From assembly GCA_977020255.1 (NCBI GenBank), contig CDROCS010000137.1, positions 62,001 to 126,000 of the forward strand: DNA of 64,000 nucleotides, in the 5' to 3' direction. Within the stretch, counting starts at the first letter, position 1; each line of letters opens with the position of its first letter. Source of the DNA: Obrimoposthia wandeli (lineage: Eukaryota). Of the stretch, positions 18,916-63,994 are shown in pieces. Both the position numbers and the translations under genes were made by a program. Under the pieces are notes generated by a model. It saw only the letters and a program-made list of their open reading frames with translations, did no database searches and had not been told where the DNA came from.

Positions 18916-18954
18916 CTGTAATAACAGTATACAATCAGATGCACAATATACTCC

Positions 18955-31464: not shown

Positions 31465-32362
31465 AGATGAAATGGCCATTTGCTGGTTAGATGAAATGAC
31501 CATTTGCTGGTTAGATGAAATGACCATTTGCTGGTTAGATGAAATGCTCATTTGCTGGTTAGATGAAATAACCATTTGCTGGTTAGATGAAATGACCATT
31601 TGCTGGTTAGATGAAATGACCATTTGCTGGTTAGATGAAATGACCATTTGCTGGTTAGATGAAATGCTCATTTGCTGGTTAGATGAAATGGCCATTTACT
31701 GGTTAGATGAAATGGCCATTTGCTGGTTAGATAAAATGGCCATTTGCTGGTTAGATAAAATGGCCATTTGCTGGTTAGATGAAATGCTCATTTGCTGGTT
31801 AGATGAAATGCTCATTTGCTGGTTAGATGAAATGGCCATTTACTGGTTAGATGAAATGCTCATTTGCTGGTTAGATGAAATGGCCATTTGCTGGTTAGAT
31901 AAAATGACCATTTGCTGGTTAGATGAAATGGCCATTAGCTGGTTAGATTAAATGCTCATTTGCTGGTTAGATGAAATGACCATTTGCTGGTTAGATGAAA
32001 TGACCATTTGCTGGTTAGATGAAATGACCATTTGCTGGTTAGATGAAATGACCATTTGCTGGTTAGATGAAATGACCATTTGCTGGTTAGATGAAATGAC
32101 CATTTGCTGGTTAGATGAAATGACCATTTGCTGGTTAGATGAAATGACCATTTGCTGGTTAGATGAAATGCTCATTTGCTGGTTAGATGAAATGGCCATT
32201 TGCTGGTTAGATGAAATGGCCATTTGCTGGTTAGATGAAATGGCCATTTGCTGGTTAGATGAAATGCTCATTTGCTGGTTAGATTAAATGCTCATTTGCT
32301 GGTTAGATGAAATGCTCATTTGCTGGTTAGATGAAATGCTCTTTTGCTGGATAGATGAAATG
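31465..32362. repeat. Minisatellite, 24-bp unit GATGAAATG(AC/GC/CT)CATTTGCTGGTTA, ~37 copies
   Basis: Direct inspection; units abut with no unique spacers. Confidence 0.95.
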
Positions 32363-40900: not shown

Positions 40901-43391
40901 GTCGTGTGCTGTGTCGACAAAACGAGCGAGCCAGAAGCAACGAATGCACAAATGCATATCTGCACAACTACATTCTCGTTCACATTTATTGATGATTGGA
41001 GGAGATCCAAGCTTTCACGCTGTCGCTGTCTCTGCTGTAGGGGGCAGCACCTTGTTATAGAGAGAAAAAGAGAAGGTTGCACTCTGCTGTTGCTACTGCC
41101 ACTATCGCCTATAATGTCGCTGCCACTCCTTCTTCCCTCCTCTTGGCATCTCCATCACCGGCATGGATCGATCCCGGTAGGGATACTGACTGTGTGTGTG
41201 TGTGCACGCTTTGCACCGATTCACCTCTACTGTGTGTGTGTGCGTGGATTCATATCTCACTCTCCAATCTCGTGGTCCCTACCAGTGACATTTGCTGATA
41301 GGGAAGCAGGTGCTGCCAAAATTTGCATTGGCACATATATCGATTTTTATTCAATATAACAGCGGATTCTATTGCCTGTATAACCATAAATTTTAGATTT
41401 AGTAGTTGATACAATTTTTAGTGAAATAGAAGCTCTACGATTTTAACAATTTTATGCCCTACGATTTGTAACAATAAAAATAGAAATCTCTATTATATTA
41501 ACATATATATATTTATATATTTATATATATATATATGATGCACTGATGATTCCGCATGTGTGTATCACACGCTGGCTCCCTCGTCAGTTGCTGTGAATCA
41601 GTGTTGTCATCTGTGGATTTTTCTTTCTGACGAATGCCGACGTGTTTTCCGGATGCCAGATGCCTAGAGAAAAGTAGTGAATAAAACAACACAACAAATG
41701 TGATTTAGACACAATTTTTCTTGCTGTATAAAATTTTAAATAAAATTATCTAATCAATTTTCAAAGAAAAATATATTATTTGAGCGAATAACCACAGTTT
41801 TGTCATTCTTATCGAAAGAAGCGAACCCACATTTCTATTCTCAACATATATATATTATAAATTCTGGCAATCGCCTATATTTTGTTGCTGTACTTATACA
41901 AAACTCTCCCCAATCACATCATGCCTGGATAAGAGTGGGTAGGCTTAGAGTGATACAAGCGGGGAGAAAAGGCACCAAAAGCTAAAATGCTACCATTACA
42001 AGGTAAGTAAGATATAAAAATGGCCAATTTCTACACAAAGCATGGGTATCATTGTCAGGATAAGTTTATATTATTTAAAAAAAGATTTTGTAGCAAATTA
42101 TACATTTATTTTATTGATTACAAAGCTTGCTTTTATACTGTATTGAAATTATTTTCCAATTTAGAAATGACAAAAATTGTACTCAGAAGATTTCCGAAAA
42201 CTTTGGAGAAACAGGAAGACAAAAGCTCTGGTGAAATTAGAAAGCTTTTACAAAATCTACATGTTTGATAAAGTAGACTTTATACCACTTAGATACATTG
42301 TCGGCATTTCTTCCAAATATGAAAAGACTTTTTAGTGTAAAAGACTAAATATGGGAAATGACTTTAGGTTTTAACATGATAATTGTGTTATGTTTTAATA
42401 ATTAATAATTAAATAATTAACTTGAAATACAGAAATACCCACAGTCTGGGAGGTGAAATCTTTCAGTCTCCGACGGGGAAAACTTTTTTCTCTCTGACAG
42501 ACTCTTCAGGAAGAAGGTGCAAATTTTGATCTCCGACATCACCAGTTTACTGCGAAGTCGGAGATAAGACTAGGGAAATGACAGATTGGTTTTTCATGCA
42601 CAAAGGTCATCTCTTACAACAAGTGGTCTTCGGGGTTGCCTATTTCCCTGGCCAGATTTCCCTATCGGTATTATCTCCTATCTCTGATGTCTCACTCTCT
42701 TCACAACCTTAGCTGTCTTCCATCTCCTCTTCCTCTCTCATCTCCTTCTGGTGAATCTGTCTTCCATCCCTGATCCAGCACTCTTTATCACGACAACTAA
42801 GTTGACCAGCTACATGCTGACCCCTCTCTACTCTCCCTGTGATTTCTGTCTCCTCATCGCTGACTCTGTCTCTCTGTCGTACCGAACTTACTCTTGCTAA
42901 AAATTATAAAATTATAAAATGTCTTGTGTTTTTTGCTTCTTCTTCTTGTTTTTCTGTGTCGGTCTGCACGAATTTGTCACCAACTGAACAACAAAGATAC
43001 ATACTATGTGCAGAGATATGCTCTCTAACCACTTCTCTCTCTCTGCAGCATATACCAAAGATATTCCTGGTTTAGCTCATCAATGATCATTTATTCTGTT
43101 TTTAATGTAGTATGCTTGATTTAGATGAAATTGACTGACGAACTCTCCCTTTTTGAGTTCCAGTGTACCGCTCGTCTCTGTTGACTCCTAGTTATATCTC
43201 GTGGCTACAGATACACACACACTGGTGCAATTAAAGAAGCACTGCTACAAGTGATGTCACAATTAAAAATCGTTTAAACAATTCCAGAAATCAATTTTGC
43301 AATAAACTTCAATTACCACAAATTACACAAAATTTTGATTTTTGTTACTTGAACTTCGCAAGTAGGGGGATATTTAGGTGTCTTTTAAACC

Positions 43392-43651
43392 GTGCAAGTG
43401 TGTGGAGTGAAATTGCGTGCATGTGTGTGGAGTGAAATTGCGTGCATGTGTGTGGAGTAAGGTTGCGTGCATGTGTGTGGAGTGAAATTGCGTGCATGTG
43501 TGTGGAGTAAGGTTGCGTGCATGTGTGTGGAGTGAAATTGCGTGCATGTGTGTGGAGTAAGGTTGCGTGCATGTGTGTGGAGTAAGGTTGCGTGCATGTG
43601 TGTGGAGTAAGGTTGCGTGCAAGTGTGTGGAGTGAAATTGCGTGCATGTGT
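43392..43651. repeat. Minisatellite, 25-bp unit GTGTGTGGAGT(GAAA/AAGG)TTGCGTGCAT, ~10 copies
   Basis: Direct inspection. Confidence 0.95.
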
Positions 43652-44249
43652 CTAATCAAACCCTATTTTATGTTACTTGGAATGATTTTTTTTGTATAAT
43701 TTTTGCTAGGCGAACGTTATCGGCAAAATAACTTGGACAGCTGGGAAAATTGCGTATCAACCCAAGACGAATTGGATTGGATTTCACCAGACTAGAGAAC
43801 CGCCAAAAGGAAGCAACTCGTATTTAGTGCTGGAAATCGGTAAATTAACAAAGTTATTCGAAGTATTGTTTTGAAGATAAATTAAGTATAAAGAAATTTG
43901 AAGGTTTCATTTTAAGAGTAAAGTAATTTATATATAACGTATTTTGAGGTATTGTCTCGAAGTAATCAGTTATTTGGAACATAAAGTATTATTTCTGAAC
44001 TGTAATGTATTACAGTAAATATGAACTAGGGACAAACTAGTAAGGTTTCGTACGAGTGTCGCCACACTAGAACCAGTAGTGTAATATAGTGTTAAGGATT
44101 TGAGAATTGAAGTATTTTTTTGTATGTTGGTAATAATAATTAAACTCTTAATTCAAACTTTGTGTGTATCATTTCTAGAATTTTTCCCTCAGTAAGTTTA
44201 GTGTTGATTTAAAGATACTAGAATCAACTTACCGGATGAGAATTAAACA

Positions 44250-47439: not shown

Positions 47440-47890
47440 TAAGAATATCGATGTATCAAAATGTTTTTTATTAATTTCCTATTTTAAAAGAGGGGTTTTT
47501 GGAATGTTTCTCAATATTTTTTGTACCAATATATGCATTAGGATCCTTACCAATGGCAGTGAATGCTTTATGTAGTCTTACAAAAATATCAAGTATACCA
47601 TTTCTTTTTTGTATACCTGCAATATAATCCATATTCTTTTTCAAATTTAAAGCTTTCATATCAACTCCACCAACTTATCTACTTAAAACATTCCCTAATA
47701 AAAAAGGATTTCTTATTAAATTATTATTGTTTATAAAGGAGAAAACCAAGTAAAAATAAAGATAAAAAACATTTATTTACTAATTCCATCAATTATTTTC
47801 CAAATAGGAGTTACCAAACCACTAGAATCGATCTTGTAACCTTGTATCTTGATATTGATATTCCATTGAGTAGGTAGAAGGATAGAGTCT
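47440..47890 (-). pseudogene. Fragment of a second, diverged Maverick: homologues of the basic protein and of the 129-aa ORF C-terminus
   Basis: DYIAGIQKRNGILDIFVRLHKAFTAIGKDPNAYIG vs DYLRGIQ...GMLDIFVKLDKLTKAFEKDPSAYLG; QWNINIKIQGYKIDSSGLVTPIWKIIDG vs EWIISIRIQGCKIGPSGLETPIWKIIDA; same order and strand. Confidence 0.9.
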
Positions 47891-48578: not shown

Positions 48579-49089
48579 AGTAGGGGGATGTGTGACTTCT
48601 GGAACAAAGACCGTGGGAAAATTTCAAGAGCGTGGGAACCCCCCCCCCCCTGAGGACAAAAATCTAGGTCAAATTTTTTGATGAGGACAAAAATCTAGGT
48701 CAAAATTTTTGAAATTTGCCCGAAATTTTTTGAAAATTTTGAAAACTTTTGAAATTTGCGCCAAAAATTTATAATATAGGTCAAAATTTTTGAAATTTGC
48801 GCGAAAATTTTTGAATTCAAATTTTTTATGACAGATGTAGGTCAAATTTCTCCCGAGTACACATGATTTTTTATTTAAAGTCATGAGGACAACTTGAGGT
48901 CACGATGAGGACAAGATGTAGGTCATGACGTCATGAGGACAATGTACTTTAAGGTCAAGTTAAGGTCATGACGTCATGAGGACAACTTAAGGTCACGGTG
49001 AAGTCAAAAAGATTCTATTTTTAGTAACATACTTTAAATCTATATCTATCTAACAAAGACAGTCACGCATCTATATTGCAAAAACCTGC
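48579..49089 (+). repeat. Left terminal inverted repeat (511 bp)
   Basis: Reverse complement of 63482-63994 except for a ~45-bp divergent patch and minor differences. Confidence 0.97.
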
Positions 49090-49190
49090 AAATTTATGTA
49101 ATCAATAGTAACATTTATTCTTATACATGTATATATATATATATGTGTGAGTGTCTAACAAAGACGTACTGCATCTATATTGCAATCTAA

Positions 49191-49571
49191 TTACAAAGTT
49201 TTTGGTCGGTTTGCTAAAAAGTTTAGTTTTGGACCAAGATAGGCACTAGGATCCTTTTCAAATGCTTTTGTAAGTTTATCTAATTTTACAAAAATATCAA
49301 GCATACCATCCCCTTTTTGTATACCATCTCCTTTTTGCACTCGTTTCTGATTTTGTATACCTCTCAAATAATCCACATTCTTTTTGTGCTTTATAGATTT
49401 TTTATCAACTCCGCCAAACCATCTACCTAAAAGATTTGCTGCCATCATATGAATACCCAAACCCTCCATGATTTTCTTTTTACTCATAGTCTTTTTACTC
49501 ATAGTCTTTTTACTCATAGTCTTTTTAACCTTAGTCTTTAATGATTTAGTAGGTTTTTTAGTCATTTTCAT
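49191..49571 (-). CDS. Small Lys-rich basic protein (KKTMS repeats, QKGDG x2); candidate DNA-condensing core protein
   Basis: The start is placed at MKMTKK (49571) because TATAAAC sits 24 nt upstream. A homologue is conserved at 47471-47700. Function is inferred from composition. Confidence 0.75.
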   Translation of the reverse strand: MKMTKKPTKSLKTKVKKTMSKKTMSKKTMSKKKIMEGLGIHMMAANLLGRWFGGVDKKSIKHKKNVDYLRGIQNQKRVQKGDGIQKGDGMLDIFVKLDKLTKAFEKDPSAYLGPKLNFLANRPKTL

Positions 49572-49656
49572 AATAAATATTAAAGTATCACTATTGTTTA
49601 TAATATAATAATAAATAATATATATAAAATAATACAAATAAAGACACAAAAATTTA

Positions 49657-50046
49657 TTAGTCAACTCTAACAGCATCAATTATTTTCCATATCGGAGTTT
49701 CCAATCCACTGGGCCCGATCTTGCATCCTTGAATTCTGATTGAGATAATCCATTCTAGCTTAGGAGGAGGTGCTTCGTATATTGTTCCATTCTCATGCTT
49801 GAAAGTGGCAGTTGATCCTTTGATTACGAATTTGTTTTCCTGAAGTGCATAGTTGATTCCGAATTGAGTTAAGAGAATATTGATTCTCTCTTTATCCACA
49901 GAAGTCAAATTTGATATTTCAAAATCAAATTTAAGCGGCTCGATGTTGACAGGAAAAATAAAATTATAGTTATGAGCTTTCTTCAAAAAGTGCATCTCAT
50001 ATCCATAATATGTATGCATAGGTTGATATAGCTTTTCGAAATTCAT
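49657..50046 (-). CDS. Conserved hypothetical Maverick protein, 129 aa
   Basis: Intact ORF; the C-terminus is conserved in the neighbouring remnant (47773-47890). Confidence 0.8.
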   Translation of the reverse strand: MNFEKLYQPMHTYYGYEMHFLKKAHNYNFIFPVNIEPLKFDFEISNLTSVDKERINILLTQFGINYALQENKFVIKGSTATFKHENGTIYEAPPPKLEWIISIRIQGCKIGPSGLETPIWKIIDAVRVD

Positions 50047-50159
50047 ATTGACAATTATAAATTGAAATATTCAATTGTTTATCCTCTAAAGCTCGATTCT
50101 AATTGGTCGATATTCTTGTTTATGAAAATCGATTAGTCTCAATTGGTTAACATTCTTGT

Positions 50160-50360
50160 TTATCGTCTAGTATTAGTCATATCCTTAAAGGGCTCACGTT
50201 CTTCGGTTACGCGCGTAGGACTTGTTATTGTTTGACTTGATGGATTAATATTTTCTCTCTGATTATTTCTATTATAATTCATATTAGAATATAAATTACT
50301 ACCGGAACCTATGTATGTACTAGCTCTACTTTCATTATTTTGATTATTTTGATTATCCAT
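50160..50360 (-). CDS. Small Asn/Ser/Thr-rich hypothetical protein (MDNQNNQNN..., 66 aa)
   Basis: ORF with TATAAAC 27 nt upstream of the ATG; no recognisable domain. Confidence 0.5.
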   Translation of the reverse strand: MDNQNNQNNESRASTYIGSGSNLYSNMNYNRNNQRENINPSSQTITSPTRVTEEREPFKDMTNTRR

Positions 50361-50397
50361 TTTCAATAAAATCATTATCAAAATATTGTTTATACTA

Positions 50398-50484
50398 AGA
50401 CAAAGACATCACATGTCATTACTTGCAAATAGTTGCAAATAGTTGTAATGTGGTCTAAAAATAGATTTTCACTTACTATATAAG
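50398..50484 (+). promoter_or_regulatory. ~70-bp repeated upstream element (copy 1) plus TATATAAG box of the IAP gene
   Basis: AGACAAAGACATCACATGTCATTACTTGCAAATAGTTGCAAATAGTTGTAATG...TGGTCTAAAAATAGATTT recurs at 52126 and 52221; TATATAAG at 50477-50484. Confidence 0.7.
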
Positions 50485-50512
50485 CTAGACAATTTCATCA
50501 TTCAATTTTGTT

Positions 50513-51514
50513 ATGACTACTAAATTTATTGCACATTATGTTTCAGAAAACGGAGAAATCCCCATTAGACGACGGCGTTTTGATAATATTTCAAGAATAA
50601 ATGAAAATATGATATATGAAGAAAGAAGATTAGAATCGTTACAAGCAAAGTTTACTGGTTTAGCCCATAAGAAAGCTTTAGCAAAAGCAGGATTTTACAA
50701 GCACAATGATTCGAAAGATAATGTAAAGTGTATTTACTGTCAGGGAGGAATATCAGGATGGGAGTACTATCTGAAACCAATGAAGCGACATCAGCTATTT
50801 TTCCCAAGATGCCCGTTTGTTTTGAAAATGAATGTTTCAAACGTACCAATAATTGATTCCAGCACCACCCAAATTGATTTTGATACAACTCCAATGGATA
50901 AAGTAGTTATTGTGCGCAATAATTATTCTAATGATATTGAAATACCTACATTATCGATTTTCGATCATGTATATATTTGGAATGATTCTTATCGATGTTG
51001 TTTCTGTCGGAAAGCAGTACCCCGACTTGACCTTATTGATACTATGCCCGAAAGAATCTTTCATACTCGAGATTGTAAAGCATCTAGTATGGGAATCAAG
51101 AACGGATGTATTGTTGAATATCATATTAGTAATGATGAAATTGATGCCCAGATGGAAACTCGTCAAATAGTTTTGCTGAAACGTGATTACAGCCATGATA
51201 GAATCAAAGCCGTTTTAGTTAATAGGTTTAAAACATTCGGTAATAAATATGATTCTATATATGAGTTTATAACGGATTTAAGGTCTTTAGAAATAAAATC
51301 TGAACCAAAACATCGGATAAATTATCTCGAGTACCTCTTACCAAATCCCGAATGTGTTGTTTGCATGAGTGATGCGATTTCCGTGGCATTTTTACCATGC
51401 GGTCACTTAAACACGTGTATTAAATGTTCAGATCGTTTTATTACATGTCCATATTGCAAGACAATTATCATTAGACGAGTAAGAAATATTAGATTTCATA
51501 GCATAGGCAATTAA
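50513..51514 (+). CDS. iap: Inhibitor of apoptosis (BIR + degenerate BIR + RING), 333 aa
   Basis: Exact BIR pattern CX2CX16HX6C preceded by AGFY; second partial CX2C..H..C; C-terminal IAP-type C3HC4 RING (CVVC...LPCGHLNTCIKC...CPYC). Confidence 0.95.
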   Translation: MTTKFIAHYVSENGEIPIRRRRFDNISRINENMIYEERRLESLQAKFTGLAHKKALAKAGFYKHNDSKDNVKCIYCQGGISGWEYYLKPMKRHQLFFPRCPFVLKMNVSNVPIIDSSTTQIDFDTTPMDKVVIVRNNYSNDIEIPTLSIFDHVYIWNDSYRCCFCRKAVPRLDLIDTMPERIFHTRDCKASSMGIKNGCIVEYHISNDEIDAQMETRQIVLLKRDYSHDRIKAVLVNRFKTFGNKYDSIYEFITDLRSLEIKSEPKHRINYLEYLLPNPECVVCMSDAISVAFLPCGHLNTCIKCSDRFITCPYCKTIIIRRVRNIRFHSIGN

Positions 51515-51577
51515 GCAAATCTAAAAATAGATGTTCAAATTGTATAAATAGAAGAAATCAGTTTATAATAATCAGAA

Positions 51578-52125
51578 ATGCTACTTCACAATATCAAATT
51601 AGTGAATATTAATTACAAGGGAATGGTTGTAAGTAACATTCAACACTTACCATTTCGGACTTCGAAGCCTCATCAGTATCGACTCAAGTGTGAAGGTTAC
51701 ACTATTATCATTTTCAAATCTGGTAATTTATATTTACATTTATATATAATTCTAATTTAGGTACATGCAGAATAATGGGTTGCAAAACAGTGCTGGATGA
51801 AAGCAGTCTTCCTTTTTATATAAAAATCGAAAGAATCCAATCAATCAGTCTCAGCAGCAATCTAGAAACATCGATAAACCTAAACAAGATGAGCAAGAGT
51901 ATGGGATCAGAAGCTGTTTACGAGCCAGAAATCTTCCCGGGACTTCGATACGTCAAATACAATCCCCTATGCGTGAACATTTTTGCTAGCGGGAAGATTA
52001 TGATACTCGGTGTTAAATCTTTAAACTATGAGTATCTGATTGAATGTATTTTGTTTAATATAGATCTTCACACTTGTGTTATTTATTTCCTAAACCAAAT
52101 AGTTTTAAAAATAGATTTCTCTTAG
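51578..52125 (+). CDS. TATA-binding-protein-like protein, ~169 aa, two exons (51578-51722, 51761-52125)
   Basis: Removing the 38-bp GT-AG intron joins IIIFKSG-TCRIMG (TBP repeat 1, LIFSSGKMVCTG) to YEPEIFPGLRY...VNIFASGKIMILG (TBP repeat 2, YEPELFPGLIY...LIFVSGKVVLTG). Confidence 0.88.
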
Positions 52126-52325
52126 AGACAAAGACATCACATGTCATTACTTGCAAATAGTTGCAAATAGTTGTAATGTCGCAAAAGTTGTAATGTGGTC
52201 TAAAAATAGATTTATCTTAGAGACAAAGACATCACATGTCATTACTTGCAAATAGTTGCAAATAGTTGTAATGTTGCAAATAGTTGTAATGTGGTCTAAA
52301 AATAGATTTTTCATGGGTTATAAAC
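52126..52325 (+). promoter_or_regulatory. Tandem copies 2 and 3 of the ~70-90-bp upstream element plus TATAAAC box
   Basis: Direct repeats at 52126-52213 and 52221-52310; TATAAAC at 52319-52325, 25 nt before ATG 52351. Confidence 0.7.
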
Positions 52326-52350
52326 AATATTTGATTTGCTTTATCATAAA

Positions 52351-52594
52351 ATGGATGAAATTATTGAATGTAAAGAGGTTCAGGATGCATTAAAAGATCT
52401 TGCTTCAGTTATTCTCAATGCTTTAATTAGGAAAAATAATCATGAGTAATATTTATATGTAGTTTATTTAAATCTTTAGGTTACGTCATCAACTACATTT
52501 ACATGAGATGTTAAGTACAATGGAAAGGTTGAATAATACTCCAATCAAATCATATGATGAAACTGATGCTCCAATGAAATCAAACCTTGTTTAA
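52351..52594 (+). CDS. Small spliced hypothetical protein, 69 aa (exons 52351-52445, 52480-52594)
   Basis: Removing the 34-bp GTAATA...TTTAG intron restores the frame (MDEIIECKEVQDALKDLASVILNALIRKNNHE-LRHQLHLHEML...); unspliced, it stops at codon 33. Not in the ORF track. Confidence 0.55.
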
Positions 52595-52627
52595 TATATA
52601 AGACTAAATTGACTCGGAATTGATAAA

Positions 52628-52891
52628 ATGGAGAAAATCGATTCAGCACCAGAAGCAACATCATCGCCAGCAACAACATCATCAGTAACATCATCACCAC
52701 CAGCAACAACAACAACAGTTATAAGAAGAGAAGAAACTATTGATGAAGTGACGATAGAAGAAGAAATTATTATAGATCCAATTATTGAAGATAAGAGACG
52801 GATAGATTTTTTTAAATGCTTTGGCTTTTATGGAACCCATAATAGCTCATGCTTCGAGTATGGAAATGAAGCACATGACCCATCTTTTTGA
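52628..52891 (+). CDS. Ser/Thr-rich and acidic hypothetical protein with a Cys-containing C-terminus, 87 aa
   Basis: ORF with TATATAAG 25 nt upstream; no recognisable domain. Confidence 0.55.
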   Translation: MEKIDSAPEATSSPATTSSVTSSPPATTTTVIRREETIDEVTIEEEIIIDPIIEDKRRIDFFKCFGFYGTHNSSCFEYGNEAHDPSF

Positions 52892-53366
52892 TAGTTTGTT
52901 TAGTGCTAGATTTACTCAACTTAATGTAGAAAAGTTAAACAAAACCGCGATGAGTGAGATTTTAGTAAATCAATTATATATTGGTAATTATAGAGATGGG
53001 TTTGATGAAACTAATCTTTTGAACTCCAATTTCACTCATGTAATCAATACATCTATACTGGATAAAATATCTTATAAGAAATTAAAATATACTTCTGTCT
53101 TTGTAAACTCAAAATTAGGAGAAACAATAATGAAGTATTATAAACAGACTAATAATATAATTAAAGAAACTATCGAAAATGGTGGTAAGATTTTAGTATG
53201 TGGTCATTATGGTAGTTTACATGCTGCTTGCATTGTTATTGCATTTTTATCTCATTCGATTGGTGTTACTGCTGCTTCGAATCTTGTTAAAGCTAAACGG
53301 ACTATTGCTGCTCCTAATGAAGCTATGCTTCATCAAATACGTATTTTTAATCGTTATCATGTGTAA
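52821..53366 (+). CDS. Dual-specificity phosphatase-like protein with degenerate active site (true start probably 52860 or 52950)
   Basis: MSEILVNQLYIGN, FTHVIN, NGGKILV and KRTIAAPN are DSP hallmarks; the HCxxGxxRS loop is replaced by CGHYGSLHA. Confidence 0.85.
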   Translation: MAFMEPIIAHASSMEMKHMTHLFDSLFSARFTQLNVEKLNKTAMSEILVNQLYIGNYRDGFDETNLLNSNFTHVINTSILDKISYKKLKYTSVFVNSKLGETIMKYYKQTNNIIKETIENGGKILVCGHYGSLHAACIVIAFLSHSIGVTAASNLVKAKRTIAAPNEAMLHQIRIFNRYHV

Positions 53367-53533
53367 ATTTTATTCGTCTTTATCTTTAATCAGTATCTTT
53401 ATTAATCAGTGTTTTTATTAATCAGTGTCTTTATTAGTCAGTGTCTTTAGTGTCTTTATTAGTCTTTATTAACCAATCAGATTTCAGGTGTATAGTATAT
53501 AAGCAGATTACTTTTTACTTCTTCATCATCATT

Positions 53534-53815
53534 ATGTCTACTCCAAACTATTTCAAGCAAGATGTTGACAAGGCGGTGAAGAGCTTCATTTCGAAGAATG
53601 TCATAGAACCAGATGTCCTGCAACTCATTGATGTCTCAAATCTACCCCTAGAGGAGCACGTAAGAAGAATGGTGCACGACAAGGCAGTCAATCTTCTCAT
53701 TCAGGGATACAATCAGAAGAAACTCGCAAACAAAGAAGAGAAAAGAAGCTTTTTCTACGAGAAGAGTTTTTTATTGTTTGTTGCTGGATGTTTCGTAATA
53801 AAATATTTTAAATAG
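53534..53815 (+). CDS. Hypothetical protein with C-terminal hydrophobic segment (MSTPNYF...FLLFVAGCFVIKYFK), 93 aa
   Basis: CCAATCAG (53473) and TATATAAG (53496) upstream place the start at 53534; candidate tail anchor. Confidence 0.7.
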   Translation: MSTPNYFKQDVDKAVKSFISKNVIEPDVLQLIDVSNLPLEEHVRRMVHDKAVNLLIQGYNQKKLANKEEKRSFFYEKSFLLFVAGCFVIKYFK

Positions 53816-53858
53816 TTTTGTCTTATAAACATTATCCCGATAATTTAATATTTTTAAT

Positions 53859-54509
53859 ATGAACTTAAAAAATAATTCAGTTTTTCAGATTGTAGGTCCT
53901 AGTGGTAGTGGGAAAACACATTTTGTATGTAAATTACTGCAAAATAATAAATACTTTAGTTTTAAGTTTAATAAAATATACTGGCATCAGGGAGGAGATG
54001 GAGAAGCTGGGTTAACCAGTAAAGAGTTTAAGAAAATCAAAAATATAAAAGTCATTAATGGATTCGATGATAATTGGTCTGAGCGATTACAACGACATGA
54101 TGTTATTGTTATTGATGATTTATATCAAGAAGCAAATAAAGAGAGTGATTTCAATAATTTATTCATTAAAATAGCACGACATCGGGAAGTAACTGTTATT
54201 TTCATCACACAAAATCTATTTCATCAAGGAGGGAACCATAGAACTCGTAATTTAAATGTACATTACCTTGTTCTCTTCAAGAATCCACGTGATCAGACGG
54301 TTGTTGATTTTGTTTCAAGACAAGCTTACCCGAATAATAGAAAGTTTTTAATTGATTCATTTCAAGATGCAACTACTATTCCTCATGGATACATTTTTAT
54401 TGATTTTACTCAAGATTGTCCCGATGACTTTAGAGTTAGAACTGATGTATTCAATCCATCGGGAATAACCCTCTATAAACAAACAAAGAAACCAGTTTTG
54501 AGAAGATGA
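53859..54509 (+). CDS. A32/FtsK-like genome-packaging ATPase
   Basis: Walker A GPSGSGKT, Walker B IVIDD, RH...IFITQNLF motif. Confidence 0.96.
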   Translation: MNLKNNSVFQIVGPSGSGKTHFVCKLLQNNKYFSFKFNKIYWHQGGDGEAGLTSKEFKKIKNIKVINGFDDNWSERLQRHDVIVIDDLYQEANKESDFNNLFIKIARHREVTVIFITQNLFHQGGNHRTRNLNVHYLVLFKNPRDQTVVDFVSRQAYPNNRKFLIDSFQDATTIPHGYIFIDFTQDCPDDFRVRTDVFNPSGITLYKQTKKPVLRR

Positions 54510-54928
54510 ATTTTAAAAAGGAAACTGTTAAACCCGAAGTTAAAAAATTGATTAAATCAGTTTTAAGTGCAAGGAAAATGGTTGCTCAAAAATCGAAAAG
54601 AACTGTTGTTAAGAAATCTAGGAGTATTGCCTATTTCAATTCTCTCATGCGTGCACCTGCTATTCGCCGCCCAGCTATTCTTAAATCATTCCCTACTTTT
54701 GTAATTGATGATTTACTTAATATGATACAGAAAATAGTTTCTGGTAAAATAATTGTCAAGGCTAACCTGAATCGGCATAAGAAACCTCTACTTGCTATGT
54801 TTCATGCCAAAACACGAATCGGTAAACGTAAGTTGCTTTATAAGCAAAGTGGTGGATTTTTAGGATTTCTCGTACCAATTATTAGCTCAATAGTTGGTGC
54901 ACTTGCTAGTAGACTAATTAACCGATGA
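54506..54928 (+). CDS. Basic Maverick virion protein with C-terminal QSGG + amphipathic helix (FLGFLVPIISSIVGALASRL)
   Basis: C-terminal GGFL..L..I motif typical of small Polinton structural proteins; ATGA overlap with the ATPase stop. Confidence 0.8.
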   Translation: MNFKKETVKPEVKKLIKSVLSARKMVAQKSKRTVVKKSRSIAYFNSLMRAPAIRRPAILKSFPTFVIDDLLNMIQKIVSGKIIVKANLNRHKKPLLAMFHAKTRIGKRKLLYKQSGGFLGFLVPIISSIVGALASRLINR

Positions 54929-54945
54929 TTATAAACATAAATTCG

Positions 54946-56443
54946 AATCAATAATATGAATTTATATATGGGATCACTTCCATCTATTCCTAAATTCAAT
55001 TTAAAAAGCAAATCTTCTTGCTGCAATGGAGAAAATATGGTTCGATCCAAGTCATCCCGTTGGTTACACAGGGGTTTCAAAATTAGCAAAAGAGTCAAAG
55101 AAGACAAAGCAGGAAACTCAAGCGTGGTTGAGAAATCAATTAGCTTACAGCTTAAACAAACCAATGAGACGTCGGTTCCCAACGAGATCATACAAGACTA
55201 GTGGACCTAATGATTTATGGCAAGCAGATTTGATGGAAATGATTCCGTATGCTAGTATTAACAACGGATATCGATATATTTTAACTTGTGTTGATGTCTT
55301 TAGCAGATTCGCGCGAGCTATTCCATTAAAGTCTAAGTCTGGTACCGATGTTTTAACCGCAATGAAGCTTTTGATTAAAGAAATAAAACCAAGAAATTTC
55401 CAAACGGATAGTGGAAAGGAGTTTTATAATACACATGTTGAAACACTATTGAAAAAACATAATATTAATCATTACTCAGTATTTTCCCAATATAAAGCCG
55501 CTTTAGTTGAACGTTTTAATCGAACATTGAGAGATCGTTTGAAAAAGTATTTCACAAAGCAGGGAAATAAGTCCAGGGTCACTGTTTTACCTCAAATAAT
55601 ACATGCATACAATCATAGTGAACACTCATCATTAGACCGAAAGAGACCCGTTGATGTTACAGATGAGAATGCTATGGAAATTTGGCAACGCCGTAATCAA
55701 TAATATGAATTTATATATGGGATCACTTCCATCTATTCCTAAATTCAATTTAAAAAGCAAATCTTCTTGCTGCAATGGAGAAAATATGGTTCGATCCAAG
55801 TCATCCCGTTGGTTACACAGGGGTTTCAAAATTAGCAAAAGAGTCAAAGAAGACAAAGCAGGAAACTCAAGCGTGGTTGAGAAATCAATTAGCTTACAGC
55901 TTAAACAAACCAATGAGACGTCGGTTCCCAACGAGATCATACAAGACTAGTGGACCTAATGATTTATGGCAAGCAGATTTGATGGAAATGATTCCGTATG
56001 CTAGTATTAACAACGGATATCGATATATTTTAACTTGTGTTGATGTCTTTAGCAGATTCGCGCGAGCTATTCCATTAAAGTCTAAGTCTGGTACCGATGT
56101 TTTAACCGCAATGAAGCTTTTGATTAAAGAAATAAAACCAAGAAATTTCCAAACGGATAGTGGAAAGGAGTTTTATAATACACATGTTGAAACACTATTG
56201 AAAAAACATAATATTAATCATTACTCAGTATTTTCCCAATATAAAGCCGCTTTAGTTGAACGTTTTAATCGAACATTGAGAGATCGTTTGAAAAAGTATT
56301 TCACAAAGCAGGGAAATAAGTCCAGGGTCACTGTTTTACCTCAAATAATACATGCATACAATCATAGTGAACACTCATCATTAGACCGAAAGAGACCCGT
56401 TGATGTTACAGATGAGAATGCTATGGAAATTTGGCAACGCCGT
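54946..56443 (+). repeat. 749-bp tandem duplication (54946-55694 / 55695-56443) of the integrase 5' region
   Basis: The copies appear identical; junction microhomology AATCAA/AACCAA. Confidence 0.95.
55026..55703 (+). pseudogene. int: Truncated duplicate of the integrase (catalytic core only, 225 aa)
   Basis: Identical to the first ~224 aa of 55775..56803; stops just after the duplication junction. Confidence 0.9.
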
Positions 56444-56803
56444 AACCAAAGTCAAGTTGCGCGGAAACCCAAGTATAAAGTTGGTGATTATGTACGTATT
56501 TCTCAAATTAGTACTATTCCTTTTATAAAGAATTTCAAAGAGAATTGGAGCGATGAAGTATTTCGTATAACTAAAATTGATAATAAACGTATGCCGGTAA
56601 TGTATTTCATTGAGGATGAAACCAATAATGTAATCACGGGTAAATTTTATCATGAGGAATTACAAGTCTTGCCTGAGAAACCGAATGTATATAGAATCCA
56701 AGAAATTTTAGAGACAAAAGGTAGAGGAAAGCATAAACAATATCATGTTAAGTGGCATGGATATACTGAACCTAGTTGGATATTAGCTTCTCAAATAGAA
56801 TGA
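55775..56803 (+). CDS. int: Retroviral-like (c-INT) DDE integrase with C-terminal chromodomain, 342 aa
   Basis: WQADL, QTDSGKEF and VERFNRTL (D,D,E); Y.I..IL...Y.VKW.GY chromodomain. Confidence 0.97.
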   Translation: MEKIWFDPSHPVGYTGVSKLAKESKKTKQETQAWLRNQLAYSLNKPMRRRFPTRSYKTSGPNDLWQADLMEMIPYASINNGYRYILTCVDVFSRFARAIPLKSKSGTDVLTAMKLLIKEIKPRNFQTDSGKEFYNTHVETLLKKHNINHYSVFSQYKAALVERFNRTLRDRLKKYFTKQGNKSRVTVLPQIIHAYNHSEHSSLDRKRPVDVTDENAMEIWQRRNQSQVARKPKYKVGDYVRISQISTIPFIKNFKENWSDEVFRITKIDNKRMPVMYFIEDETNNVITGKFYHEELQVLPEKPNVYRIQEILETKGRGKHKQYHVKWHGYTEPSWILASQIE

Positions 56804-57821
56804 ACTCAATGTATGTTGTATTACCAAGTAATGGTTCGCCATTAACTCAGCCGAATAATACTGCTAATAGTTTTAGTATTGATTATCAAAGCTCAATCAA
56901 TTTACCTGGTAGTTGGGAAGCTGCTCTTACGGAATTTTCTTTCAATTACTCTCCTCTATCTATTCAAAGTGAAACTGAGATTGAATATATTACCCAACGT
57001 GAAGCTGATAAAGTAACTGATGTGACTTTACTATTTGATAAGGGTCAAATGGATTTGGCTCGTATTAAGGCTGGCAATGATTTCACAATCTTTTTAAATA
57101 AAGAGAATCGAATTCAAATTATGGGAAAAGGGGATAATTTTGAAATAGTTTTTAATGATGAAATTGTTGCAGAACAATATGGATTTCCGCCTAACGTTGA
57201 AAAAGGAAAGCATGCAGTTTCAAAAATTATGGATAATCATGTCAAGTATCCGATAATTACATTCAAGATAAAAAACAGATTCGTTAAACGCGAGAGGAAA
57301 ATATATTCAGTTCTCAATGATTTTCTTTTTGCCGATAGCAAAAGTATGTGTAAACATTTTAAAACAGTGTTACCAAATGTATTTGAAAACTTTAAACTAG
57401 TTAATAAATTGATTCATTTCAAATTGAAATCCAATATTGATAAAATCATCATGGATAAATCATTAGCCTCAATTATCGGTTTTGATGAAAATGAATTTGA
57501 AAATAAAAATGAGGTTTTCAAAGCAAAGATTATTCCTAAAATGACTAATGCATATAATCAGATTTATATCTACACGAGTATTACCGAACCAATATTCGTA
57601 GGAGGAAGGAAACTTCCCTAATTAAAGCAATTTGGGTTCAACAGGAAAAGCACAAGTATGGTGATGTTATACATATTCCAATTGAAAATCCAATGTATAT
57701 TCCCGTGAGTTCTTCTTCTATAAACAATATTGAAGTTAATATACGTAATGATTCTGGAAGATTAATTACATTTGCTTACGGAGCTAAAACAAGTTTAACG
57801 GTTCATTTTCGTAAATTATGA
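56800..57821 (+). CDS. Minor capsid (penton-like) protein, frameshifted at CCC 57616-57618
   Basis: YVVLPSN...NT.NSF...I.L.G.WEAAL N-terminus; adding one C restores ..PLIKAI...NPMYIPV...IEVNIRNDSG..TVHFRK*, the typical C-terminus. Confidence 0.88.
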
Positions 57822-58180
57822 TTGATTCAAGTATAATCGATGCATATAGTAAACCGATGCAAGGAGGTGATTTGCCTTATTTTACCGGAAAACAGTATGG
57901 ATCAGGATGGATGAAGGTTTTTGGTCGCTTTGCTTTCCCACTACTCAAGCGACTCGAGAAATTTATTGCTAATGTTGGATCAAAATACTTGTCAAGTGAT
58001 GAGAAATTTCTTCCCACACTAAAGGAAGCAGCCTTGGATCAGGTGAATGAAATTTCACCAAGTCTAGCTGAATTTTTGAAAAAGAAAACTCAAAAGGGAA
58101 GTGGTTATAAACGTAAGAAAACATCTAAAGCATTGGGTATAAACAAACGTTTGAAAATAGGTGGAACAATTTTTAAGTAA
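57818..58180 (+). CDS. Small virion protein with MQGG/QYGSG motifs and an amphipathic helix (candidate membrane-penetration protein), 120 aa
   Basis: QYGSGWMKVFGRFAFPLLKRL motif and position between mCP and MCP are typical of Polintons; function is inference. Confidence 0.8.
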   Translation: MIDSSIIDAYSKPMQGGDLPYFTGKQYGSGWMKVFGRFAFPLLKRLEKFIANVGSKYLSSDEKFLPTLKEAALDQVNEISPSLAEFLKKKTQKGSGYKRKKTSKALGINKRLKIGGTIFK

Positions 58181-59408
58181 TGAGTTGTGCTAAAACTGAA
58201 TTGTGTATATTCGATAAACCTATACCTCAGGTTGTGGTTGATAGTGCTAGTTTTGAAGAAATATTTCCGACAAATACGGTTAATGGGACATCTTCTCCGG
58301 ATTTAGAATTCAATATTAATGGATCCAATACTCAATATCTTGATTTGAATGATAGTTTATTTCTCGTTAAATTGAAAGTTACAAAGGAAGGTGGAGGTGA
58401 TTTGGATGATGGTATGGATATCAAATCAGCTAATTACATGTTGCATACTCTTTTCAAGGATGTGATTCTCAGTCTCAATAATGTGAAAGTTGAGGGAAAT
58501 AATACTAGCTACACTCATAAAGCAATGATTGAAACATTGTTGAATTACGGTAATGATACGAAATTGATTAATCTTGATGCAATTGGGTTTGACAATGATG
58601 AAAAAGAAGAATTGCTTCGATTGCAAAGTCTAAAGTATTGTCACTTTGTGGGAGTCTCCATTTGGATTTCTTTAAGCAACCAAAGTATCTTTTACCCGGT
58701 GTAAGTGCACATATTCGAATGAAGAGAAATCCAGTAGGTTTTAGTGTTGTTTGCGCTGATACTATTAAAACCGCAATTGAGATTACGGAAGCAAAACTGC
58801 TGGTTCGAAGAGTAAAGGTGGAACCATCTGTACTTGTTGCACATCGAATGGAGTTGGAGAAGCAAAATGCATGTTATCCTATTAGAAAAACTAATCTTGT
58901 TTCTCACGCTATCCCTACGGGAGCACTATCTTATTACAAGGATCAGATTTTTGGTGATATGCAACTTCCAAACTTTGTTTTAATTGCTTTCCAAAACACT
59001 TCTACCTATGGAGGTGAGTCTAAAAATGAGGTTTCTCAATTTGGACACATGAATGTGAGTTCAATTAAACTTGCACGAAATATTGATTATCAAGAATCTT
59101 ATACGAATGACTTTGAAAACGATGATTATGTGTTTTCTTATGTGCAATCTTTAATTAGAAATCTTGGTCATTTGGATAAGGATGCTAATATTGGAATTTC
59201 AATGACTGATTTCAAGGACAAGTATACACTGTTCACATTTGTTCTCTCTCCTGATTTCGATATTAATCAAGCTCAAATACCTAAACAGGGAAATTTGAAA
59301 GTAGAAATCAAGTTTTCAAAAGCACTTGAACATCCTACTAATATTATAATCTATGGAGTATTCGATTCTGAGGTTCAAATTACCAAGGGAGGAACAGTAC
59401 TAGTATAA
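58180..59408 (+). CDS. Major capsid protein (double jelly-roll, PY family), frameshifted at A5 58601-58605
   Basis: K.EL.IF...Q, LEF.I, YLDL.DS, LF....L.LN, YxHKAxIETLLNY, LHLDFF.Q.KYLLPGV and F.LSPD motifs; adding one A gives DEKRRIASIAKSK. Confidence 0.92.
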
Positions 59409-59439
59409 ACAGAATGAAAACAATAAAGAAAATATATAA

Positions 59440-59816
59440 ATGAAGTAAGTCAGTTTGAATTTATTAATTAATATATATTCTAGTTCAGACGAGATAACAA
59501 AAGCGGAAGAAAACTACTCGGTTCGCGTTTCAATGGAGTCTACAGCCTTGATCACATCCCCTCTTTGACTCGACTAGGTGGATATGTAATCAATACACAT
59601 TCATCTAATTTGCGTGGTGAACATTGGATTGCAATACATGTTAAAGAAAATGAAATCTTTGTTTTTGACCCCTTTGGGATATATTACCCTTCTAAATTAG
59701 TATCTACAGTACTTGATTCTGGAAAGAAAGTATATTTTAGTAAGAAACATTATCAAAATGTTTTAATACAGTCATGTGGACAACTCTGTCTGCTTTGGTT
59801 AAAGCATAAACAATAG
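59440..59816 (+). CDS. Adenain-like cysteine protease with a short first intron (donor 59445)
   Basis: GEHW, FDPFG and Q..CG triad. Acceptor 59483 gives MNSDEITKA and needs a 1-nt fix at GG 59505; acceptor 59488 gives an open frame (MKRDNKSG). Confidence 0.9.
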
Positions 59817-59853
59817 ATATAAACAATATCAAATAAAATTACTGCTATAAAAA

Positions 59854-60494: not shown

Positions 60495-63400
60495 ATGGTA
60501 AGTTTATTGTTATTTTTCTGCTAATTTATTTATTTCTAGAATTGCAATATGAACAAAGAATTATGCTTCGAGGAGAGTCACAAGGAATGTGATAGAAAAA
60601 TGAAGAGCTACTTTGGACAGAAGTTCAACGGACAACAATTCTACGTATGTCCAGTATGTCTCTCCGCGGAGGAGATTGATTGGTCGGAGTTTGTGGTGCG
60701 TCATCGTATCCATCTTCGTCATTTCCAGCAACGTGGCAAGAAGGCCATCTTTCAGAATAGATCTGCTCATATTTCTCGGGTTGCTGGTCCAGTTGTTGCT
60801 GCTGTTCCAGTATCTGCCCAAATTTCTGCTGCTGTTACTACCCTAGTTGCTGCTGCTGTTCCAGTATCTACCCCAATTGCTGCCGCTCCAGTTACTAGTC
60901 CAGTTGCTTCACCAATGGTTCCAGTTATGCCTCCTCCAGTTGGTATGATCCCCGCGCCGTTACCAGCATCTACCCGCAAGAGAAGTGGTATGCCCACTTC
61001 AGGTAGCTCTGTTGCGAAGTTTTCCAGGGTTGATGCTGTTAAGCGTAAGACTAGTCTTCGGGGCACGATTGAGACATTGTCATTAGATGTTTCTAATGAC
61101 AATCTCATCGATTTACAAGTTCCTGTATCCCTTTTGACTAGCTTAAGGGACACAGTCAGCAAGTTTGCAACTTGCAAGGTTCAATTCGGGGTGCGTGTTG
61201 AATTTTCCAATATTGGAGAAACACGCGCTTGGAATTTTTCCAATAGAGGGCTCCCCATAGATGAGGGGTTTATAGATGTGGGAGTAGATGGGATCAACAA
61301 GAAGATTGAGAATTATTCTCAAAGTAGCAGTAATTGGGTAGTGAACCGCTTCCTGGAGATTTCGTTTGTTGTGACTAAAACAACAACAATGAACTATATC
61401 CAGGGAAGTAGTTATATACCTACTCCATCTGAGTTAGCACTCTCACATTGCGTGATCAATGTGCAGAACTCAAACACTTTCTGCTTCCTTTACAGTATCT
61501 TATCTGTACTTTTCCGCGAAGTATTTCGCTCTAATCCTCATCGGGTTAATCAATATGATGCCTTTTTGAGTCAATTAGTTTTTGATGAGAATGAGATGCC
61601 GATGCGTCTATGTAATATACCGCGATTTGAGAGAAAGAATCCATCTCTCTCAATCAACGTATTTACATTCAATAGGTTCTCTAATGTGCAAACAGATGGG
61701 GATATCTTCAAAAATCCCTATGTGGATGTCATTTACAGGACCACAAACCCGGACGCTAAACCAATCAATCTTCTCCTTTTAGAAAATAATGATAATTTTC
61801 ATTATGTCGGTATTCCTAAACTCAATAGGCTGCTTAATTATAGGAACAAAGGTGTATCTAATTGCATTCGGTGTACTTGGTGCCATAAATGTCTTCATGG
61901 ATTCCGTAGTCCGATAAGTTACGCCAAACACGTTCCGCTCTGTAGGATGAATTTAGATCATACAACACTTTATTCAATGCCTACAGAGAAGCATATTGAG
62001 TTTAAGGACTTTTCAAAAACGATTTATCCGCCTTTTGCTGTTTACGCGGACTTTGAGGCTGTGCTACCACCACATGGAATCCACCATCAGATTCAACTTC
62101 CAATCTCGGCCGGTATGCTCATGTCTCCCGTTGCAGCCACGAGAGGGTATACACATGATTACTCGGTCTTTACCGGAGAATCTTGTGTGGTATCCTTTGC
62201 AGAAATTAGAGTACTTGGCGAAAGAGGTTGTACTCCCATGGTACAAGAAGCATGCGATCGAGGTGATGCGACAACTCACACAGGAACAGGTATCGAGTTT
62301 CAATGCAGCAAGAATCTGTTACCTATGTAAGAAGAAACTCACAAACAAAGTTCGAGATCACGATCACATGACTGGCGAATACCTGGGAGCTGCACATGCA
62401 AAATGCAACTTATCAATGAGAATTAATCGATCTTTTCCCGTCATTTTTCATAATCTGATGGGTTATGACATGCACCACATATTGAAGCACGCACTGTGTA
62501 AGTTTCCTGACTGGAATGTATCTGTTATACCTCAATCAACAGAGAAATTCCAGGCTATGATGGTGTATATTGGAGGAGTCTGTATACGTTTCATCGATTC
62601 ACTTCAATTTTTGAACAGCAGCTTAGAAAAACTTGTGGAAAACCTGGGTGTGACTCCTCTTACACATTCGGTCTTCCCGCAACATCTGGTGAGCGCCAAG
62701 GGAATCTTCCCATACGATATGGCAGTATCAGAGACTGCTCTTCGCGCAATCACCAGCTTACCGCCAAAGTGGGATGAGAAGATCAAGCCAGCACAATATG
62801 AAATGGCGAAGATGGTCTGGACTCAGAGCGGCTGCTCATCGCTCTGGGACTATATGCTGGTCTATATGAAGATGGACGTCTACCTTCTAGCAGACGTGTT
62901 TACAGCATTCCGGACCAAGGCCATTGCTGACGATGGATTGGAGCCACTCAATTTCTTCTCCATCCCTGGTTTGTATTTTTATAATTTTTTCTAATTTTAG
63001 ACACTAACACACATATATACATGTATAAGAATAAATGTTACTATTGATTGCATAAAGATGCAAGTATTTGCAATATAGATGCGTGACTGTCTTTGTTAGA
63101 TAGATGATTTTCAAAGTAATAATTTTCACAATGATTTTCACAATGATTTTATTTCCAGGACTGACTTTCGCGAGTGCTTTCAAATCCCTGCTTCGTCCGG
63201 CTTCTTCTTCTGCTCCCGTTGTGCGAGTCGAGCTAATACAGGATCCAGAAATGTACCGACTCTTCCGGTCTGGGATTCGCGGGGGTATGACATTTGTTAA
63301 TGAACACTGCGTTGACGCCATCAATGGTACAGAACTTTTGTACATTGATGTAAATAATTTGTACGGGTGGGCTATGTCCCAGTTTTTACCTTGTGGTAAC

Positions 63401-63508
63401 TTTTCCTGGGTGACTGATCGGTTAGAGTTGGGGAATATTATTTCCAGCTTAAAATCAGCAGATTTATCCTGTAGTCGCTTCGCAGGTTTTTGCAATATAG
63501 ATGCGTGA
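60495..63508 (+). pseudogene. polB: Protein-primed DNA polymerase B with 2 introns (60498-60539; 62969-63158), a frameshift at 62196 and C-terminal truncation
   Basis: GSSYIP, VINVQN, Exo I VYADFE, endonuclease-VII-like RDHDHMTGEYLGAAH..CN, Exo II HNLMGYD, Exo III YMKMDV and Pol A YIDVNNLYG are present. Motifs KxxxNSxYG and YxDTDS are absent because the frame runs into the right TIR at 63482. Confidence 0.95.
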
Positions 63509-63994
63509 CTGTCTTTGTTAGATAGATATAGATTTAAAGTATGTTACTAAAAATAGAATCTTTTTGACTTCACCGTGACCTTAAGTTGTCCTCATGACGT
63601 CATGACCTTAACTTGACCTTAAAGTACATTGTCCTCATGACGTCATGACCTACATCTTGTCCTCATCGTGACCTCAAGTTGTCCTCATGACTTTAAATAA
63701 AAAATCATGTGTACTCGGGAGAAATTTGACCTACATCTGTCATAAAAAATTTGAATTCAAAAATTTTCGCGCAAATTTCAAAAATTTTGACCTATATTAT
63801 AAATTTTTTGCGTAAATTTTAAAAAATTTGACCTACATTTCAAATTTTTCGCGCAAATTTCAAAAATTTTGACCTAGATTTTTGTCCTCATCAAAAAATT
63901 TGACCTAGATTTTTTTTCCTCAGGGGGGGGGGGGTTCCCACGCTCTTGAAATTTTCCCACGGTCTTTGTTCCAGAAGTCACACATCCCCCTACT
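63482..63994 (-). repeat. Right terminal inverted repeat (513 bp) followed by TSD TAAGGG
   Basis: Reverse complement of 48579-49089. Confidence 0.97.

Follow-up and report, generated by a model that had tools for sequence, protein, structure and literature searches.

Cellular and archaeal TATA-binding proteins (TBPs; PF00352, with solved structures such as 1ytb, 1qn3, 2z8u and 1mp9) are two-lobe saddles of about 180 residues. Two Glu residues in a loop of the C-terminal lobe contact a conserved Arg and a conserved Thr of TFIIB/TFB, and the basic cluster that binds TBP-interacting regulators lies mostly on helix H2 of the N-terminal lobe (Ravarani et al. 2020, PMC7221094). In the TBPs of large viruses the same Glu residues are poorly conserved, and these viruses carry TFIIB-like genes of their own (PMC7221094). 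The TBP-like factor of herpesviruses, as outlined in PMC12529657 and as generally understood, works with host RNA polymerase II (Pol II) at late promoters that have a non-canonical TATA-type box. By comparison, how Mavericks and adintoviruses are transcribed is not known; these elements of about 15 kb have no RNA polymerase. Here we analyze a 64-kb stretch of DNA from Obrimoposthia wandeli (contig CDROCS010000137.1; referred to as the window), in which a Maverick/Polinton-type element carries a gene for a TBP-like protein. As its predicted fold, Pfam match, family and gene neighborhood all testify, the locus is a genuine TBP-like gene of a Maverick/adintovirus-type element and encodes a two-lobe TBP homolog, just as the initial annotation, made from the sequence alone, had proposed. 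Viral TBP homologs are known in giant viruses, poxviruses and herpesviruses, but the minimal variant described here, found in a different class of element, is new.

The gene does have a prior record of sorts. The legend to Fig. 5 of Starrett et al. (2021, PMC8502044) applies the label 'TBP' to a gene of MELD viruses with adintovirus-like PolB. Judged by this label alone, that ORF probably belongs to the same or a related family; the legend provides a name but no analysis of the sequence, its fold or its promoters, no survey of the family and no function. The automatic annotation at JGI also names family members TBP, and our literature search found no analysis of a TBP gene in a Polinton or Maverick. 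In presenting such a gene as one not previously characterized, the initial annotation overstated its novelty in view of the published label and the JGI names, yet it holds that the family has nowhere been characterized.

A TBP-like gene in two pieces

The TBP-like gene occupies positions 51578–52125 of the + strand and consists of two ORFs in different frames, 51578–51760 (60 aa) and 51775–52125 (116 aa), with a single AT-rich GT...AG interruption of 38 nt (candidate intron or insertion). The two pieces were never joined: all searches and structural models were made either with the pieces separately or with intact relatives. Translated from where its frame opens, the second piece scores 48.7 bits with the Pfam TBP family PF00352 (E 6.9e-13), well above the curated cut-off of 22.9. 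Among solved TBPs, its best match is 1mp9 (8.4e-15), and human TBP is matched at about 2e-7. The first piece alone has no Pfam match; it nonetheless shows significant similarity to 41 family proteins over their N-terminal halves, reaching 57% identity (2.3e-14) in the best case. When the pieces are aligned as separate rows against uninterrupted relatives, they abut, with exactly one column missing between them; wherever a relative extends over this column, it has Gly there. Both pieces keep every family-invariant residue and are otherwise open. Their pairing as halves of one gene is far beyond chance. Thus, the claim that two unrelated-looking ORFs belong to one TBP-like gene is borne out by the Pfam match, by the N-terminal halves of the relatives and by the exact colinearity. 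The predicted product of about 169 residues also agrees with our count, since the whole codons of the two pieces amount to 48 + 120 residues plus one split codon.

Structural models and conserved residues

The AlphaFold model of an intact relative, P0002, was obtained with a pLDDT of 90.9 and a pTM of 0.80, and its best 44 matches in the PDB are all TBPs (probability 1.00, TMq 0.64–0.74). The model of the second piece from the window (pLDDT 93) gave the same picture, its best 44 structure matches again being all TBPs. Because the pieces were not joined, the window model covers only the C-terminal lobe and the last strand of the N-terminal lobe. The P0002 model has two strand-rich lobes, the second of which is complete. 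The first consists of strands and a short first helix, without the long helix H2; in the DSSP assignment, the chain passes from the final strand of lobe 1 to the opening strand of lobe 2 without forming a helix. In sum, the predicted fold is the TBP saddle, complete in its C-terminal lobe and reduced in its N-terminal lobe, where H2 is missing. The comparison with TBP structures called for by the initial annotation turned out in its favor.

Residue conservation was counted over 44 full-length family members, with numbering according to P0002. The second, third and fourth DNA-kinking Phe positions (F41, F101 and F117) are each occupied by Phe in all 44. At the first position the family varies, its residues including K, L, C, F and Y; the window copy has Tyr there, as read by eye from the spacing to a conserved Pro. 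This is the pattern, three intercalating Phe kept and the first apparently lost, that had been noticed at the outset. The Glu-Pro-Glu-x-Phe-Pro loop of the C-terminal lobe is nearly invariant (E97 in 43/44, P98 in 40/44, E99 in 44/44 and P102 in 41/44), and both TFIIB-contacting Glu residues are also present in the second piece of the window copy.

A family of mini-TBPs in Maverick gene neighborhoods

A word-based search with the second piece returned five proteins of 135–156 aa, the four closest being 52–57% identical. The subsequent profile search matched 43, 646 and 3064 cluster representatives at E<=1e-30, 1e-10 and 1e-3, respectively, of which the last tier will take in ordinary TBPs. All 44 full-length members tested match PF00352. 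Since members are typically about 150 aa long, we refer to them as mini-TBPs. Archaeal TBPs give the highest scores with the family profile and human TBP a weaker one, so nothing points to a recent origin from an animal TBP.

In at least 10 metagenome loci, mini-TBP genes adjoin Maverick ATPase, integrase and capsid genes. One of these loci (L020, 7.4 kb) is colinear with positions 51775–59801 of the window through its TBP-like, RING protein, ATPase, integrase and capsid-module genes, and others (L010, L021, L022, L023, L008, L011, L012, L013 and L014) have one or more neighbors in common with the window element. A further contig of 14.2 kb (L033), in which all genes are uninterrupted, appears to be an intact element; it has an uninterrupted TBP-like gene of 149 aa directly upstream of the ATPase gene. 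The ATPase itself has 499 relatives at E<=1e-30, the closest being 82% identical, and the contigs of the closest relatives (81–82%) stop short of the TBP position. Pfam searches of the neighbors in short metagenome contigs gave no information. As a separate observation, the accessory genes at the left end differ among relatives: where the window element has an IAP gene, L033 has a gene for a ubiquitin-conjugating enzyme (UQ_con; 222–719, - strand), and L020 has a RING-only protein.

Comparison with known TBPs

Mini-TBPs share with cellular and archaeal TBPs the two-lobe saddle, three of the four kinking Phe, the Glu-Pro-Glu-x-Phe-Pro loop for TFIIB/TFB in the C-terminal lobe and the SGK-x4-G-x-K strand-turn in both lobes. 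On the other hand, they are shorter by some margin (about 150 aa against about 180 aa), and their N-terminal lobe, which lacks H2, has a shorter hairpin and does not conserve the first Phe position, is too diverged for profile alignment with cellular TBPs. There are also substitutions at individual positions. The Asn of the first strand of lobe 2 is replaced by Ser (42/44), and the Thr preceding the G-x-K turns is replaced by Met in lobe 1 and by Leu, Thr or Met in lobe 2. Finally, unlike cellular TBPs, mini-TBPs are encoded by a mobile virus-like element. They are the smallest two-lobe TBPs found in this analysis.

The TBPs of large DNA viruses (Nucleocytoviricota), such as those of Heterosigma akashiwo virus and Terrestrivirus and the asfarvirus B263R homolog, resemble mini-TBPs in being virus-encoded proteins of the TBP fold. 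A structure search against large-virus TBP-like proteins gave E values of 1e-8 to 1e-3 at 9–23% identity, and the best viral match (1e-8, 17–23% identity) was weaker than the best cellular one (6e-10, 25%). Large-virus TBPs are also larger (190–500 aa). Moreover, they mostly lose the two TFIIB-contacting Glu residues and pair with a viral TFIIB-like protein (PMC7221094), whereas in mini-TBPs these residues are near-invariant. By keeping the residues that contact host TFIIB, unlike the TBPs of giant viruses, mini-TBPs offer a natural minimal TBP–TFIIB–DNA core. Two scans of IMG/VR were also made. One was without matches and the other gave a single match (L007, 9731–10297), which was rejected as a family member: it is a canonical two-repeat TBP of 188 aa (Pfam 3e-52) and lies next to an NCLDV major capsid gene on a giant-virus contig.

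The late-gene TBP mimics of herpesviruses (KSHV ORF24, EBV BcRF1 and HCMV UL87) possibly follow the same logic as mini-TBPs, the likeness being one of functional analogy. Herpesvirus TBP mimics bind Pol II directly and not via TFIIB. At roughly 440–1000 aa they are far larger than mini-TBPs, and the structural matches in BFVD (E about 2e-3, TMq 0.33–0.44; BcRF1 itself at E 2e-3 and TMq 0.33) are too weak to place mini-TBPs in the herpesvirus vTBP family.

The 38-nt stretch: intron or insertion

The stretch between the homologous parts of the window gene is 38 nt long with a GC content of 11%, starts with GT, ends with AG and contains stops in all three frames. The initial annotation took it for an intron. 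The GT...AG ends, the AT-richness and the exact colinearity on its two sides speak for this view; what weighs against it is that no relative shares the stretch and that the copy is damaged. In its sequence, the stretch has all the features of a short spliceosomal intron, and the chances that it is spliced out are about even. The matter is of consequence, because a protein can be made from the window copy only if the stretch is removed by splicing.

What makes an intron attractive is, to begin with, the rarity of such ends: 38-mers of the GT...AG type make up 0.38% of all 38-mers in the window, and those that in addition have a GTRA.T-type start 0.02%. Furthermore, the stretch is not a copy of flanking or any other window sequence. 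The small gene that comes next contains another such stretch, 34 nt long and likewise bounded by GTAAT...TTTAG|G, past which its frame is open for 37 further codons. These two stretches are the only matches to GTAAT-N20-35-TTTAGG on both strands of the 64-kb window. If both were introns, they would be rare cases of introns in Maverick genes and would imply that the lineage has long been transcribed in the host nucleus.

Several observations pull in the opposite direction. The 38-nt stretch is absent from all of the approximately 30 loci of relatives that were examined. These include L003 and L020–L024, where the ORF call starts at the internal Met of the second ORF; there is no intervening stretch in them, and their short calls come from truncation at the end of the contig, lack of a start codon, a stop or a small frameshift. 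A search of the protein collection with the whole first ORF, including its tail, found no look-alike. The eight other element genes that can be compared with those of L020 have no such stretch, while two of the eight have plain 1-nt frameshifts. In addition, Barreat & Katzourakis (PMC8097293) report that the intact Mavericks of vertebrates have no introns, and they read short 'introns' proposed by gene-model software as probable insertions.

Some of these observations also feed the strongest alternative, according to which the window copy is dead: the stretch would be a decay insertion in an endogenized, non-autonomous element and its GT...AG ends would be coincidental, while the family elsewhere may still function. 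We regard this as a serious contender, though its chances fall somewhat below even. The state of the element lends it weight. Its two capsid-module genes have one 1-nt frameshift each, although single-base frameshifts could equally be assembly errors; polB is spread over three or more frames, with the C-terminal part of the domain missing; and the integrase region contains a 749-bp tandem duplication. A few relatives, namely L021, L023 and L024, likewise have one stop or small frameshift each in the TBP-like gene. As it happens, these three are low-coverage metagenome contigs, in which either decay or sequencing error is possible. However, a dead copy accounts less readily for the scarcity of GT...AG ends, for a stretch that duplicates nothing in the window, for two pieces that are both open and retain all family-invariant residues, and for the like-sized stretch with the same ends in the adjacent gene.

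One more candidate intron, a GTAAGT...CTAG stretch before the polB start codon, was considered and rejected; it lies at the expected transcript start and nothing supports it.

Promoter motifs

The octamer TATAAACA occurs 17 times in the window against 6.35 expected, a count reached by none of 100 shuffles. Eleven of the 17 copies are inside the element and on the gene strand, mostly about 30–45 nt upstream of start codons. Examples from the element, where copies are spread over 49595–59825, are at 52319–52326, 53824–53831, 54474–54481, 58138–58145 and 59818–59825; in the case of the ATPase gene, the motif is 35 nt upstream. Counts on the coding strand exceed expectation in relatives as well: 9 against 0.7 in L020, 3 against 0.2 in L010, 6 against 0.7 in L025 and 9 against 1.2 in L033. 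Distances from motif to start codon in L020 are similar to those in the window element, and in L008 TTTAAACA takes the place of TATAAACA. Most genes of the window element and of its relatives have the motif some 35 nt ahead of the start codon. These patterns make it likely that TATAAACA is a lineage-wide core-promoter motif.

Some genes of the element are preceded by canonical boxes, TATATAAG or TATAAATA, instead. This group comprises the IAP, TBP-like and Ser/Thr-rich/phosphatase genes, the last of which has a TATATAAG box upstream. The putative promoter of the TBP-like gene (51520–51550, + strand) combines the 13-mer TCTAAAAATAGAT (51520–51532) with a canonical TATAAATA (51543–51550) about 35 nt before the ATG, and TATAAATA is also found upstream of the TBP-like gene of L020. 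The IAP gene has TCTAAAAATAGAT at 50454–50466 (+ strand), 59 nt before its start codon, followed by a TATATAAG box. In the putative promoter region of the small gene (52199–52326, + strand), two copies of TCTAAAAATAGAT within a 95-bp tandem module are followed by the TATAAACA at 52319–52326. Altogether, TCTAAAAATAGAT has four exact copies (50454–50466, 51520–51532, 52199–52211 and 52295–52307), all within 1.9 kb, and those at 50454, 51520 and 52295 precede the start codons of the IAP, TBP-like and small genes by about 58 nt. The 95-bp module, to which the copies at 52199 and 52295 belong, has a relative ahead of the IAP gene as well, at 50378–50457. With canonical boxes on some genes and TATAAACA on most, we infer two promoter classes and, with them, an early-to-late logic.

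Proposed function

Our best explanation, whose chances as a whole stand near the halfway mark, combines a promoter-factor mechanism with a gene that is split in this copy by an intron-like stretch. The mini-TBP would bind the promoters of its own element at a TATA-like box, for which TATAAACA is the candidate. It would then recruit host TFIIB and Pol II, a step suggested by the gene content of the element, which lacks both: no gene for an RNA polymerase or a TFIIB-like protein was seen in its 15 kb. At the same time, the mini-TBP might escape those host regulators of TBP that dock on the helix missing from its N-terminal lobe. Since the IAP and TBP-like genes have canonical TATA boxes, host TBP could switch them on first, after which the mini-TBP would drive the remaining genes. 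On this view, the mini-TBP would be a promoter factor dedicated to the element and working through host TFIIB and Pol II. A minimal TBP together with a conserved non-canonical TATA-type motif makes an early-to-late switch a concrete hypothesis.

There are features that do not sit easily with this mechanism. The first Phe position is not conserved in the family, and the equivalents of the lobe-2 Asn and Thr are replaced; therefore, DNA binding may differ from that of TBP. The motif TATAAACA is itself a near-canonical TATA box, which could be read by host TBP. It also lies so near the start codons that the leaders would be only a few nucleotides long, unusual for Pol II genes of animals.

Alternatively, as the initial annotation had also entertained, the mini-TBP could be a decoy that soaks up host TFIIB or sits on host TATA boxes without supporting initiation, thereby dampening transcription of the host or of a competing virus. 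The conserved loop for TFIIB contact (its role being taken from PMC7221094) would suit this purpose, and the loss of H2, which removes most of the surface with the basic cluster for regulators (PMC7221094), might leave the assembled complex incomplete. Nevertheless, we find a decoy unlikely. The saddle and the three kinking Phe are strongly conserved, as expected for sequence-specific DNA binding, and the strand-matched copies of TATAAACA before element genes in diverged relatives represent an obvious positive target. For these reasons, we favor redirection of Pol II, which the initial annotation had likewise suggested, over a decoy function.

The remaining alternative, a recent one-off capture of a host TBP/TRF gene, intron included, that is now decaying, was the refuting scenario of the initial annotation and can be dismissed as extremely improbable: a captured host gene fragment could indeed look like an interrupted gene inside a mobile element, but the family is large and embedded in conserved Maverick gene neighborhoods, its members are uninterrupted at 50–58% identity, with an intact 149-aa copy in L033, archaeal TBP is matched more strongly (8e-15) than human TBP (about 2e-7), and the architecture of the N-terminal lobe is unlike that of every cellular TBP matched.

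Taking the promoter-factor mechanism further, one may imagine a private core-promoter code in animal-type Mavericks/adintoviruses. In such a system, a mini-TBP of 150 aa, made early from a canonical TATA box, would read TATAAACA boxes in front of the structural and replication genes of the element, link these genes to host TFIIB and Pol II via its conserved C-terminal loop and, having no N-lobe helix, remain invisible to the regulators of TBP; very short spliceosomal introns would have been gained by its gene and the following one in one host lineage. This broader picture is speculative, and we consider it doubtful in its entirety.

The element around the gene

The Maverick/Polinton-type element is at least 15.4 kb long and has terminal inverted repeats of roughly 0.5 kb. 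The left repeat (48579–49148) consists of inverted-repeat pairs I1–I10, which are 80–99% complementary to 63001–63994. The right repeat (63001–63994) is cut by the end of the window and broken by a segment of roughly 370 nt that carries the last piece of polB. Because the window stops inside the right arm, the outer end of the left repeat is not fixed. Hallmarks of Mavericks present in the element are the long terminal inverted repeats, a protein-primed PolB (broken), an rve integrase and an A32 ATPase. The order of genes on the + strand is IAP, TBP-like, small gene, Ser/Thr-rich/phosphatase, A32-like ATPase, rve integrase, capsid-module genes and protein-primed PolB; close to the left end, two further genes run on the - strand.

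The upstream neighbor of the TBP-like gene is an IAP-like gene with a BIR and a C-terminal RING domain (50513–51514, + strand; Pfam BIR 1.9e-13, zf-C3HC4_3 1.2e-11). Downstream of the TBP-like gene, the putative model of the small gene (52351–52594, + strand) contains the 34-nt intron-like stretch; no relative of this gene was found among the relatives' loci. Next, at 52628–53366 (+ strand), a Ser/Thr-rich ORF overlaps a dual-specificity phosphatase ORF in another frame (Pfam DSPc 2.4e-13). From their arrangement, the two apparently form one gene with one frame change. The A32-like genome-packaging ATPase gene (53859–54509, + strand; Pfam Pox_A32 5.2e-6) is intact, and its product is 74–82% identical to relatives.

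The region of the retroviral-type integrase (55026–56803, + strand; Pfam rve 1.6e-13) comprises two copies, of which the first is truncated and the second is full (342 aa, with a weak chromodomain match). The copies arose by the exact 749-bp tandem duplication (direct repeat D2, 100% identity). With its arms identical throughout (54946–55245 and 55695–55994), this duplication is either very recent or an assembly artifact. The two capsid-module genes that follow were named through homology to unnamed proteins of syntenic relatives, so their capsid identity is putative. The first (56776–57818, + strand, one frameshift) encodes a homolog of the 370-aa capsid-module protein of L020, and the second (58180–59408, + strand, one frameshift) a homolog of the 405-aa putative major capsid protein of L020 and of a 417-aa protein of L023. 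Finally, the polB gene extends over 60549–63508 (+ strand). Its Pfam DNA_pol_B_2 matches (3.9e-11 and 2.2e-6) cover profile positions 4–160 and 186–259 of 468.

Other features of the window

The 64-kb window as a whole has no Rfam or tRNA matches, and the ten window proteins that were looked up are absent from the protein collection. Outside the element, there is debris of other Maverick copies. A segment at 47567–47867, just outside the left repeat, is 77–86% identical to 49275–49754, and a polB-like ORF is located near the window start (3518–3886, - strand). On the host side, minisatellite arrays (6996–7939, 13065–14189, 18785–20423, 31435–32287 and 43341–43715), one of which contains an N gap, give rise to long spurious ORFs on both strands. 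There is also a possible host exon at 20339–20737 (- strand).

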